64,000 bases of DNA, taken from assembly GCF_052425735.1 (NCBI RefSeq), contig NC_135768.1, positions 15,562,001 to 15,626,000 of the forward strand, in the 5' to 3' direction. Origin of the DNA: Oculina patagonica (Eukaryota). How positions within the stretch are numbered: position 1 is the stretch's first letter; every line of letters begins with the position of its first letter. The notes under the pieces are model-generated. The model did no database searches, had not been told where the DNA came from, and worked only from the letters and a program-made list of their open reading frames with translations. A program made the position numbers and the translations under genes. Positions 59,051 through 64,000 of this stretch are shown here, in pieces.

Positions 59051-62000
59051 ATGATTGATGGAAAAGTTCACGGCACCGATTGCTTCGAAGTCGATTCGGT
59101 AAGTTTAAAAAACTTTTAAAAACTTTATCTTAACTTTACAAAACTACCCGTTGCGCTACAAATTGTCACATGTGATTCTAGATCTATCCCAGATGAGAAT
59201 CAACCCAACAAAAATTCCTTCGCTCGCTTTAAACTTGCTTGTAGCATTTCCTAATAATTTGAATAACTTCTGCTTTATTGATTTGCAGTTCCTACAGAGA
59301 AATGGATTCTCAAAACTCTACCAGGTTCGACATAAGGAGAACGGAAGATTTTATACGATGGAAGTGTCGCCGCGGGATGTTAACTCTAAAGCGCCGGTTA
59401 GCCCATATGTGCAGCTAACCAAAACATCGCTCTCTCCATTCTGGGTCAATCTGCGGTTTACCTTCCAAACTCGCTCAAAGTTTTACTACATTTTAGATTT
59501 CGTTGGGAAACAGACCTTGTTCGAGCGAGTCAAGTCTTGCGGTGGATATATTCCCGAGTCGGTAGCAAGATTTTACGCGGCGGAAATCGCAATCGCTTTG
59601 GAGGAATTACATAGTTCTTGTCTGGCATACAAGGATCTTGCCTTAGACATGGTGCATCTGGATTCTGAAGGGCATGTTGTGCTTTGGCGAAGTTTTTGCG
59701 GGAAGTTTTACTGGAGTAAACATGAATGCGTTTGTTCGCTTGGCGGGTTTTGTCATGGAGATCCGTGTGACAACAACCATAATCTCAAAAGCGATTTTGA
59801 TTTTCGAGAGGACTGGAAAGCTCTTGGAAAAGTGATAAATGCAATGCTGACGGGAGATGGGTATCCACGATCAGTTCGAAGGACCGGTATGTACAACGAA
59901 AATGGTGGTAGATATAACCAGATGTCACGCAGCTAGTTATTAACTTGTCTTGTGTTAATAGTGTTATCTTGAAGTCGTTAGCACCTAATTCGCCAGGTCA
60001 TTAGTAACACTTTATTATAAATCGCCCTACAAAACTCGCCCAGGCTGAAAAATCCCTTATGGAACTTGTTTCATGTTATTTGTAAAACTGTACATTTTTT
60101 TGCGAACCAGGGTGGTTTTTGTTTCTATTTTGGCTGATTTGCGTTTAACTTAAGATCGTTTCGAAAGATTACCCGAGCTAATTGCTCTTTCCTGATGCAC
60201 ATAGACAAAAGTAGAAATTAGCATTTTAAGTGCGCTAAGATTTTGCAGTTTTATTTTTATTTTTGGCAATCGCTTAACACTCTAAACTAAACTTTTAGCT
60301 TCGTAGCTAACGCGGCAACAATCTTACGTCCAACGAGCTGAAACGTTTTCAGTCACTGTTTTGATGCTTAGGCTAAACGGAAATTCGATTTAGGTAAACC
60401 TTTTGTCATTGAGCTTTTCATATATTGTACTTCGAGTTAAAATTGGTTTGTAACAATTCAAAACAATTTGAAGTATGTATTTTTTTTTTACCACCTCGAA
60501 GATAAATTTCTTCTTGCTCTTTGCTAGAATTTGCCAGCAAAGGCTCAAGTTAAACTTGAACTTGTAAATTTTGACTGTATTTAAACATTTCCCGAAGTTG
60601 AACTTTCACTGTTATCAAAACTTTCCTTGCGTACAAGTTTACCAAAAATCTATCTTACCAACAATTTATCTTTTGGGATGATTTGTGTTGGATCAACAAG
60701 TTTGCATGAATATTTTTCTCGTTTCTTTTTTAAGTTTTAATCCGTTTTGGAGTTTTCTTGAAAGAAAAACAAATTTTCTTTATATCCAAACTTTGCAGGA
60801 ATTCGTGAATTGCACTTTGTTGGGTTTAGGTCTTGAGTTGGGTTCTTCATTATCATGATTTTTGTTGGTTTACTTCGTCGGTTTATATTACTTTTTGCAC
60901 AGATTCGACCGCTGATTTGAAAACTAAAAAATTTAATGATCACAAAATTTATATGGTTGCCAAAGGCTCTTCATAGGTCGCCAAAAGCTCTTCGTTAGGC
61001 AGTGCATGTTTCTTGCAAGTTTTCTCGCTCGGAGAGGCTGAAAGGGGAGCGTTGTAGTTGTAAAAAAAGGGGGGATTAAGTTAAGTTTACTTACGAAGAA
61101 GTATTTCGTGCAAAACCTCTCGCGAAAATACTTCAGAAGTGACATGAAAATTGTGCTTACTTATTCCCGTTTTTTTTTTAAAAAGCTAACATTTCTACTA
61201 TTTACCCAGTAGATCAAACCCGGTTTGTTTGTTTGGCATTCATTGTGGCAGACAAAACCCTCTAAAACGAAAATCGTGGCTAAATTTTATCGGATTGTCC
61301 AGATCAGATTTGATCTCATTAGAATTTTTATTTGAAAAAGTAAATAACTCGCTGTTTTTCTCTCGCTGAATTTTCTGTGGTTTTTTAAGACTTTCTTTTT
61401 TAAAATTCTGGATTTAAAGTCCCAGAATATTATACTGTGTATTTATTAATCATTTTCGTGAGGTTGATGACGATTTGGGAACGTTTACGTAGATCTATTG
61501 ACAAGTGTTCTTTTAGAAAACGATTTAACGTCAATTTATTGTTTGAATAACCTACAAGGACGGGGCACGTTTAAAACCGCTTAGGATAACATGAGTCAGG
61601 ATTAAACATTTCTCCCTTTCCTGCACGAAAATCCGGAAAACCTTCTCAAGGACAATTTCCTTGTCAATAAATCTTCTTTTACTAGTGCAAGAACTGTTTG
61701 AACTGACTCACTTCTGTACGTGACGTTTAACAACGCGCGTTTGTCGTCACTAAATCAGTGAATGCTGTAAAGTACTTAACGCTGTAAAAGCTTTTAACCT
61801 ATTGTGTGACAGGTTTATTGTACAAATTTGACGCAAATCCGTACGTGCTGTAAGCATTCAAGTGGCCAAAAATGGGCCAACATGACTTAATAGTGTTGAA
61901 AGCATAAAAATAATACAATGTTTAGACTAACAATAGAAGGGCTTTGCGTAATGGACTGTTATGTTGGAAGCCCTTTTAGTGCAGTGCTATTCAAAATGCG

Positions 62001-62206
62001 AATTCTTCTGACTAATTGGCATACACTTTTTATGTTTTAATGTACTTTTAATGTTAGAATTTGGTGGTATATTAAGAAAATATCTTTCTTGATTATGATT
62101 TGTTTTGATATTTTGAGTATTTTATGCTTCACAATGTATTTATTACATCATAAATTCCTTATTATTTAATAGCCCCGCGCTTGTTTGTTTCAAGGGTTTT
62201 TTTTTG

Positions 62207-62251
<45 letters not shown>

Positions 62252-63841
62252 TTTTATTTTTTTTTTTTTTTCTCTCAAGAAATTTTCTGTAAGTTAGAAT
62301 TCCATATGGTAAAACTATCCAAAATACATCGATATCAAACAGAAAGAAAGCTTTACAATTTTCAAATAAACATCGCAAGTCTTTGAACATCATAAAACTG
62401 TGACGAAATAAAATGCGAACAAGCCCTGCAGTCGAAAGCTTACAAACATTCGAAATAATAGGCCTGCCATAGGCTTATATGGGGTCATAAGGTTTGTGCA
62501 TGGGGCGTATTTTTGGAGGGAAGAGATTGTTTTGGAAGGCTTTTCCTGCAAGTTTACGAACTGAATTAGATAGATGACAAGCATTCCTGGGAATTAATAA
62601 GGATTGATATGGTATATAAACGAATTATCCGTCTAGACGGATATTGAGAAGATAACGAATTCCAGTTCAGACGAATTATGAGCGATTACGGATCTAATAA
62701 ACCGGAATTAAAGAGGCAAAGGTTAAACTGTTTCTATATTTTCACGAGGATAATACGTCTAAAAATGAATAAAATATATCAGGAATGTTTTAAACAAGTA
62801 CAGAAATGTTGTCACCGTAATCATGCTTTTTTCAAATCCTGTGTATAATCTTGCTTAGTTAGATAGATGAAGTCGAAGTAAAGGAAATTGAAATGTCCGT
62901 TAAAACACAAAGCAGTCAAAACTAAGTTTGCTTGCTGTTATTCTTGTGGCTTATCAGATATTTTTTTTTATTCTATTTGCGGACACACCTTAACAAAAAT
63001 AAATCGCAGCTTTTTCTCTACCTTGCTCTGAGATTATGCCTTTGCAACAGTGCGGGCAGACCATAGTTGGTAGTAAATGTGAATAATCAATAAAAAAAGA
63101 AGAACTTACGAAGTGGCGAGCTATAACAAAAATAAGTCCGCACTGCCTACATGTGTCCAACCTCGTCCCCAGGAAGCGCCCTGGGAGAGGTACTTCTACT
63201 GCTTAGCTTTGTGATTATTGTATTGCTCGGTCATGGTAGCGAAATTTTTTGTTGCATAGATAGAGGGGGAAAAGAGTCAAAATTAAATTCAAGCCAACAG
63301 GGTAGAGGAGGTAGAATAATAAACAGTGTGATCTAAGAAGGACGGAGACGTAGCATATGTTATGCACCCTAGGGCCCTGAATTATGCACATAAGTACATT
63401 GTCACTTCTTTCAGATTGTTCCGTTTGTTCTACGTTGTCTCGCCGGAGGAACAGTATTCGATACTAACCCAAATAAGAAACCGCAGATTCTGACGCGACC
63501 CATTCTCGGCGAACGAGGAGCTTAGTGTCGGCGCTTCGCACTAGACACAAAAATATACCTGCAAGTCAGTATTTACTCTTTGTTTGGGTTTGAACAAGAA
63601 AGATTGCAAATAAAACAATATCTTGTATATAAAAACTCTTCTCAGCTTTTAATTCTTAATTGTTACCATGAAAGAAACAATTCTTCAGTTGCCCAGTTTT
63701 AACATAGTTGCAAACATTTTCCTCGCCAGTTCCCTCTCGGCCGCTGCCAGTGATTTGATCAGTAGACTGGTACGAGGTGACATCTCTCGAAGCGACCAGA
63801 TCCAGTCCCACCCGTTTTTCAAGGACATCAACTGGCACGAG
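59051..63841 (+). CDS. AGC-family (SGK/RSK/S6K-like) pseudokinase; exons 59051-59098, 59289-59886, 63708-63841; continues beyond the window
   Basis: Phase-compatible GT-AG junctions. AGC scaffold SPFWVNLRFTFQT..FYYILDF, ARFYAAEIAIALEELH, EDWKALG..MLTG, LSAAASDLISRL, IQSHPFFKDINW. Catalytic motifs are degenerate. Confidence 0.82.
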
Positions 63842-64000
63842 GTAAGATTAAGTTTTAATAAATATTTAACAAATCTATAACCACCAATACGACAAAGTTA
63901 AAGTAGATATGCATGTCAAGTTGAAAAAGACGATGAAAATACTGTAAAACTCTGTAAAGCCTCTTTTAAGCCCCATCTATAACCTTATTCAGCGAACTGT

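Follow-up and report, generated by a model that had tools for sequence, protein, structure and literature searches.

A predicted AGC-type pseudokinase at the N-terminus of a RhoGEF64C/arhgef49-like exchange factor in Oculina patagonica and other cnidarians

The stretch of DNA analysed here (the window) comprises 64,000 nucleotides (nt) of the Oculina patagonica genome (contig NC_135768.1, positions 15,562,001 to 15,626,000) and carries, on its plus strand, the 5′ end of a gene whose first three exons code for a degenerate kinase-like domain. We consider it probable that this domain is the AGC-derived pseudokinase at the N-terminus of a protein of ~1,770 amino acids (aa), the O. patagonica orthologue of the Rho guanine nucleotide exchange factor (RhoGEF) RhoGEF64C/arhgef49. 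The exon map draws on four coral contigs with orthologous loci (L005–L008) and on sequencing runs from relatives. Three of these runs (X1, X3 and X4) had depth on exons only, and their contigs joined exons at GT..AG; they therefore represent spliced transcripts, of species ~95–97% identical to O. patagonica. A fourth run (X16) covered introns as well and is therefore DNA.

Exon 1 has a 5′ untranslated part of at least 58913–59050, transcript contigs of relatives spanning 58913–59098, and a coding part (59051–59098: start codon, MIDGKVHGTDCFEVDS, beginning of the kinase-like N-lobe) whose translation is conserved in the orthologous loci. A stop codon lies in frame directly 5′ of the ATG, and the N-terminal pattern ..HG[TA]D.F[EQ][VI]..SF also opens the Acropora, Nematostella and hydrozoan proteins. 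Intron 1 (59099–59288, GT..AG) showed no RNA depth in its interior in the relatives' runs; its 59098/59289 joint, which an initial annotation of this DNA had predicted from the letters alone, was present in transcript contigs of X3 and X4 and appeared as a loose end in X1. Exon 2 (59289–59886, 199 codons) holds the bulk of the pseudokinase, from the G-loop equivalent to the alpha-G region. Exon 3 (63730–63841), which begins at an acceptor seen in the transcripts and the orthologous loci, encodes the part of the kinase-like domain with alpha-H and alpha-I, together with its AGC-type end, HPFFKDINWHE. Intron 3 starts at 63842 and occupies the remainder of the window (to 64000). Exon 4 follows at window-equivalent 67528–70414 (L004 3528–6414), as placed by transcript contigs and phase, and downstream exons reach window-equivalent ~102185. 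The gene has 17 exons over about 43 kb, of which about 38 kb lie beyond 63841; that position, taken by the initial annotation as the end of the feature, is merely the end of exon 3.

The exon 2 translation scored 38.2 bits against the Pfam Pkinase domain (PF00069; cut-off, 31.7) and matched 258 kinases among PDB sequences at E<0.01, with SGK1 (E 6e-21) ahead of aPKC iota, AKT2, PKA and MSK1. With a family profile, SGK1 (86.7 bits), MSK1, aPKC iota, RSK2 and S6K1 came out on top of the PDB, all within ~15 bits. Each of the 60 highest-ranking PDB matches in the sequence and profile comparisons, and each of the 50 highest-ranking structural matches, is an AGC kinase. As modelled with AlphaFold2 (mean predicted local distance difference test (pLDDT), 78; predicted template modelling score, 0.76), exon 2 has the kinase strands and the alpha-E/alpha-F core, and Foldseek placed only AGC kinases among the 50 best matches to this model, with SGK1, aPKC iota and inactive AKT2 at the head (template modelling score, about 0.6). 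The model, which was built on a shallow alignment, had no alpha-C helix between beta-3 and beta-4, a Pro-rich segment, and to that extent does not confirm the structural helices originally described as intact. A protein atlas search with the domain gave generic kinase clusters only, and an NCBIfam search gave nothing useful. The earlier description of an SGK/RSK/S6K-type kinase therefore holds for the AGC type; the subfamily is blurred by the ~15-bit spread across SGK1, MSK1, aPKC iota, RSK2 and S6K1, and the idea of an independent gene gives way to the N-terminal domain of a RhoGEF64C/arhgef49 orthologue.

Alignments with SGK1, PKC iota and a PKA-like row showed how thoroughly the catalytic motifs have been altered. 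The glycine-rich loop GxGxxG reads Q-R-N-G-F-S, with all three glycines lost (LQRNGFSKL, 59292–59318), and the beta-3 motif AMK reads TME (YTMEV, 59352–59366), which places a Glu (E25 of exon 2) at the position of the catalytic Lys. YRDLKPEN is replaced by YKDLALDM (59628–59651), in which the Lys and the Asn are lost, and the Arg (R134) of WRSFCG (59685–59702) aligns with the DFG Asp. A Cys/His-rich stretch (59697–59780) takes the place of the activation segment and the APE/P+1 region. Translation of 59051–59098, 59289–59885 and exon 3 reproduced the substitutions quoted in the initial annotation, and that part of the observation is correct because they appear in the kinase alignments. By its loss of the beta-3 Lys and the DFG Asp, exon 2 is classified on sequence as a catalytically dead AGC-type kinase-like domain, a pseudokinase, in which the kinase fold is retained and the nucleotide site dismantled, all elements for ATP–Mg binding and phosphotransfer being replaced. 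Such a domain would be unable to phosphorylate. The beta-3 Lys-to-Glu and DFG Asp-to-Arg changes look like a reciprocal charge swap.

These unusual residues are themselves family characters. M-E-V was invariant in 17 family members, the beta-3 Glu being replaced (by His) only in the scyphozoan, and the Arg at the DFG Asp position was invariant across the family. Scleractinians alone retain the HRD Asp; K, E, N or H stands in its place in Nematostella, the octocoral, the hydrozoans and the scyphozoan. Three Cys and one His make up the conserved core of the Cys/His stretch, E-C-x(1,2)-C ... C-x-N-x(1,2)-H, with C147 and C160 nearly invariant and a His at or beside position 164; in the metal-free AlphaFold2 model, pLDDT was low over this stretch (residues 147–163). 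The domain ends in the AGC-type HPFF..[IV]xW, followed by basic residues and PP. Pfam detected no Pkinase_C (PF00433) tail or hydrophobic motif in the exon 4 translation or in a hydrozoan ORF (open reading frame), and no PX or MIT domain in any part scanned.

The gene continues well beyond the kinase-like domain. Cross-species footprinting revealed more conserved plus-strand blocks 3′ of exon 3, including an open frame of ~1,000 codons 3.7 kb away. Transcript contigs of the relatives join exons 2, 3 and 4 directly; a loose end beyond 63841 reads into the start of exon 4, past the acceptor at window-equivalent 67527/67528, and exon phases are compatible through exons 4, 5 and 6. Pfam found no domain over cut-off in exons 4, 5 and 6; exon 6 supplies a CxxC..CxxC ribbon along with the first DH helix. 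The later DH and PH-like exons were stop-free where aligned, up to window-equivalent 102185, and these Oculina exons were 76–100% identical to the DH–PH part of Acropora and JGI proteins. The complete protein of ~1,770 aa thus consists of the pseudokinase (about 250 aa), a disordered Ser-rich linker (about 960 aa), a short helical segment, a 4-Cys zinc ribbon, a DH domain and a PH-like domain.

The same arrangement was found in other cnidarians. A hydrozoan contig (L019) contains a 648-aa ORF that runs from the pseudokinase into the Ser-rich region and is followed, 51 nt later, by an ORF with the RhoGEF domain (PF00621, 137.9 bits); pseudokinase and RhoGEF also occur in this order in two more contigs (L020 and L021). 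Full-length homologues were sought with the C-terminal 476 aa. PF00069 and PF00621 were found together in single proteins of Acropora millepora, A. palmata and A. muricata (1,767–1,804 aa), in single Logan transcript ORFs (1,778 aa), and in proteins of Nematostella vectensis (LOC5513651, 1,669 aa), Clytia hemisphaerica (1,171 aa) and Sanderia malayensis (1,976 aa). No full-length family member came up in a representative library of 1.84 billion proteins, since the long ones cluster elsewhere; such members were found later via exon 4 and the DH–PH region. The best named hits outside cnidarians were arthropod "rho guanine nucleotide exchange factor at 64C" and vertebrate "arhgef49" (36–43% identity, E 1e-84 to 1e-98), with which the cnidarian proteins share a CxxC..CxxC..ERKE ribbon N-terminal to the DH domain and a C-terminal W[KR][KR]RRN..NIMI. 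These best hits and shared motifs identify the gene as a putative cnidarian orthologue of Drosophila RhoGEF64C and vertebrate arhgef49. A NET1/ARHGEF3-like exchange factor, our first guess from PDB hits, was replaced by this assignment once the named orthologues appeared.

A word-indexed search retrieved 25 orthologous ORFs of the pseudokinase (identity, 43–90%), with TMEV, WRxFCG and ECVCS retained; when these ORFs were aligned, M-E-V, W-R-x-F-C, Y-W, E-C-x-C-S and D-W..G were invariant or nearly so. Among the four orthologous loci, pairwise ratios of non-synonymous to synonymous substitution rates (dN/dS) were 0.06–0.13 for exon 2 and 0.20–0.25 for the large downstream exon, and when exons 2–3 of the relatives' transcripts were compared with this genome, 21 of the 26 listed differences were synonymous and 5 non-synonymous. 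No second copy or haplotig was present in the whole genome, in which the next best match was only 26% identical; the gene is single-copy. The pseudokinase ranges over scleractinians, Nematostella, an octocoral, hydrozoans and a scyphozoan, and a hidden Markov model of it matched five cnidarian lineages (Acropora, Nematostella, the octocoral Paramuricea, Clytia and Sanderia) and none of about 110 bilaterian RhoGEF64C/arhgef49 orthologues, even at E 10. The pseudokinase is therefore no relic in decay: it is pan-cnidarian, and purifying selection on it is strong. The original proposal of a dead AGC-type domain kept under selection is borne out in this respect, the degenerate motifs themselves being conserved across Cnidaria; the pseudogene considered alongside it, with neither expression nor orthologues, does not fit a domain that has orthologues across the phylum and is transcribed and spliced in relatives.

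The junction between exons 2 and 3 requires closer attention. Two bases, TC, are inserted at 59871–59872 (placement ambiguous by 1–2 nt) and shift the frame 15 nt upstream of the exon 2 donor. The insertion is absent from all four orthologous loci, from the transcript contigs of X1, X3 and X4 and from the DNA run X16. All orthologue ORFs end in ..S[KN][DEN]R/YV, where the O. patagonica assembly reads ..SVRRT (here and below, a slash within a motif marks a splice junction). Relatives join exon 2 to 63730, and the acceptor there, ...CGCCAG/TTCCC, is conserved in four of four orthologous loci; Acropora proteins read ...RTQTE/CSL..AASDL.. across this junction. The initial annotation had joined 59886 to 63708 instead, thereby assigning to exon 3 another 22 nt (63708–63729) that form an intronic polypyrimidine tract in the relatives. 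The AG on which that junction would depend (63706–63707) is absent from L005 and L007 and lies only 5 nt past a likely branch point, TTTTAAC (63697–63703), which has a counterpart, TATTAAC, at the same place in L007. An AG 5 nt after a branch point would be too close for normal use. The earlier description of frame and splice sites as intact is not confirmed for this assembly: with the two extra bases, splicing from the conserved donor to the conserved acceptor breaks the frame and ends translation at codon 225, nine codons past the start of exon 3, so that the pseudokinase is cut off from the remainder of the protein. On paper the frame can be rescued in two ways, by the acceptor at 63708, 22 nt upstream of the conserved one, which keeps the frame open, or by a weak donor 4 nt downstream (59890; TAT/GTACAA), which restores it. 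The affected loop, between alpha-G and alpha-H, varies in length and is ~25 residues longer in Nematostella. In a search for sequencing runs of O. patagonica itself, no run contained more than 19% of the exon's words. The insertion may be an assembly error, a heterozygous allele, a fixed frameshift or a compensated change.

Public models of the gene omit the pseudokinase exons, probably owing to this insertion. Exon 4 is a 100% match to GenBank "hypothetical protein ACROYT_G035740 [Oculina patagonica]". GenBank KAL9958690.1 (1,139 aa) begins within exon 4 and carries a spurious terminal exon after exon 6, at window-equivalent 73807–73980, and the end of the DH–PH part is a separate model, KAL9958694.1 (282 aa). 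GenBank and RefSeq models of O. patagonica both start at the exon 4 Met (MNSNN...), and annotations limited to the short form are consistent with a real break in the assembly sequence. Short isoforms without the pseudokinase, starting at the same internal Met, are also predicted in Acropora millepora (X3), A. palmata (X2) and Montipora foliosa (X2), which suggests that an alternative exon 4 start would make a pseudokinase-free RhoGEF. The M. foliosa X2 model is misnamed 'serine-rich adhesin for platelets-like', and RefSeq labels the family proteins "uncharacterized" while giving them automatic Pfam matches to kinase and RhoGEF.

Several of these observations weigh against a pseudokinase–RhoGEF in O. 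patagonica. The stop at codon 225 is one, and with it the long isoform may not be produced in this individual or species; another is that RefSeq LOC144630310 is the short form only (1,462 aa). The HRD Asp is present in scleractinians (YKD), so that residual or atypical chemistry is formally possible. A complex prediction for the hydrozoan pseudokinase (residues 1–265) with its own zinc ribbon–DH–PH part (L019 4300–5604) scored 0.21, below the mark, and gives no evidence either way.

The first two of these points would be explained if the O. patagonica pseudokinase exons were a recently disabled remnant, the insertion being real and fixed and only the short RhoGEF isoform being made. The occurrence of TC in no relative, the stop reached through the conserved splice sites and the start of both public models at MNSNN agree with this explanation, as do the short isoforms modelled in Acropora and Montipora, from which a pseudokinase-less exchange factor may be viable. 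However, exons 1–3 contain no other lesion, the downstream exons are all open, the insertion may be an assembly error or a single allele, and both the donor at 59890 and the acceptor at 63708 offer an in-frame rescue. Any loss of the pseudokinase would have to be very recent, because 21 synonymous differences stand against 5 non-synonymous ones in the comparison with close relatives. Considering both sides, we regard a disabled remnant as unlikely.

Far less credible is a small gene that codes for the pseudokinase alone, in three or a few exons, the third beginning at 63708. The AG at 63706–63707 does exist in this genome and the frame from 63708 is open, but transcripts of the relatives use 63730 and continue into exon 4, the AG is missing in L005 and L007 and crowds the likely branch point, and the full-length Acropora, Nematostella, Clytia and Sanderia proteins are pseudokinase–RhoGEF fusions. 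Equally improbable is an atypical but active enzyme with displaced catalytic residues, as in WNK kinases, in which the catalytic lysine is relocated: the scleractinian HRD Asp and the conserved fold and alpha-E/alpha-F core speak for it, but other cnidarian classes have K, E, N or H in place of that Asp, the G-loop glycines and the metal-binding Asn and Asp are all gone, Arg and Glu are conserved at the DFG Asp and beta-3 Lys positions, and no alpha-C helix is modelled.

We therefore return to the N-terminal pseudokinase of a RhoGEF64C/arhgef49 orthologue and consider how it may act. The beta-3 Glu and the Arg at the DFG position may form a salt bridge across the former ATP site, and the Cys/His core may bind zinc; together, the Glu/Arg pair and the putative zinc would fix the fold in one conformation without nucleotide or phosphorylation. 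The pseudokinase would then have no catalytic task but would regulate, or act as a docking module for, the RhoA-type exchange factor at the far end of a long, phosphorylatable Ser-rich linker, and short isoforms from the exon 4 Met would supply the exchange factor without the module. In its full form, this proposal describes an ancient pan-cnidarian module in which an AGC fold has become a nucleotide-independent, zinc-stabilised switch that controls the RhoA exchange factor in cis or recruits it to partners, with an alternative start giving a module-free isoform; we offer this full form tentatively and hold it to be doubtful as it stands.

Other features of the locus and its relatives were noted. 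Upstream of the pseudokinase, conserved plus-strand blocks at 52880–52996, 53609–53764, 54097–54228 and 54744–54836 are the last exons of another gene on the same strand. This gene (52880–54836) gave weak Actin-family matches (E 2.6e-5 and 0.008) and probably encodes an actin-related protein; its place upstream of the pseudokinase is the same in all four orthologous coral contigs. Within intron 2, a stretch of 35–37 nt at ~63519–63555 recurs at 25 or more other sites in the genome, on many contigs and with 94–97% identity, and probably represents the conserved terminus of a dispersed repeat. The same intron contains a long poly-T tract (62190–62270) of over 60 T with few interruptions. In contig L020, which comes from a distant relative and is similar at the protein level to the hydrozoan L019, an ORF at 999–2204, 8 kb upstream of the pseudokinase–RhoGEF gene, matched Pfam Herpes_teg_N (PF04843), which is unusual in an animal contig.

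The closest sequence and structure matches of the Oculina domain are SGK1, aPKC iota, the N-terminal domains of MSK1/RSK, S6K1 and AKT, with which it shares the HPFF..[IV]xW end. Unlike these kinases, it has all catalytic motifs replaced and a Cys/His cluster for the activation loop, and neither an alpha-C helix was modelled nor a Pkinase_C detected. The vertebrate RSKL proteins (RPS6KC1 and RPS6KL1) are AGC-group pseudokinases in which the degenerate domain forms the C-terminal kinase-like part of larger multidomain proteins with PX and/or MIT domains. The Oculina domain is likewise AGC-derived, degenerate and embedded in a multidomain protein, but it is N-terminal, no PX or MIT domain was found with it, and its partner is DH–PH. 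Trio, Kalirin and obscurin also combine a Dbl-type RhoGEF with a kinase-fold domain in one polypeptide, and their kinase domains are of the CAMK/MLCK type. In these proteins, however, the kinase domain is C-terminal to DH–PH, whereas the cnidarian domain is AGC-like, N-terminal and attached to another RhoGEF subfamily. The kinase–RhoGEF combinations of Trio, Kalirin and obscurin arose by separate recombination events (PMC5499878), and Drosophila obscurin PK1 is a pseudokinase scaffold (PMC10129394).

GEF64C is a Dbl-family exchange factor that works through RhoA in fly axon guidance (PMC2199320), the fly protein being the only one for which exchange on RhoA is known, and the RhoGEF64C/arhgef49 family has been recorded from protostomes and non-placental vertebrates (PMC5499878). 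The C-terminal 480 aa of RhoGEF64C/arhgef49 (vertebrate si:dkey-91i10.2) are 36–43% identical to the cnidarian protein, and both have a zinc ribbon right before the DH domain, a weak PH-like domain, the terminal W[KR][KR]RRN..NIMI and a long, poorly conserved N-terminal region. They differ in the N-terminal kinase-like domain, which the cnidarian proteins carry and the bilaterian orthologues examined do not. Pseudokinases and Dbl RhoGEFs are each well known; no paper in our literature search described an AGC-derived pseudokinase joined to an exchange factor of the RhoGEF64C type, and the combination appears to be undescribed in the literature found. For annotation, these data mean that both public O. 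patagonica models of the gene are incomplete. The retention of the domain through the whole of cnidarian history, with the "wrong" residues conserved, suggests that the domain has a specific function in Rho signalling other than catalysis. If it is true that the ancestral metazoan GEF64C had a kinase domain that was lost in bilaterians, there would have been an unrecognised coupling between a kinase and a RhoGEF at the base of animal Rho signalling.

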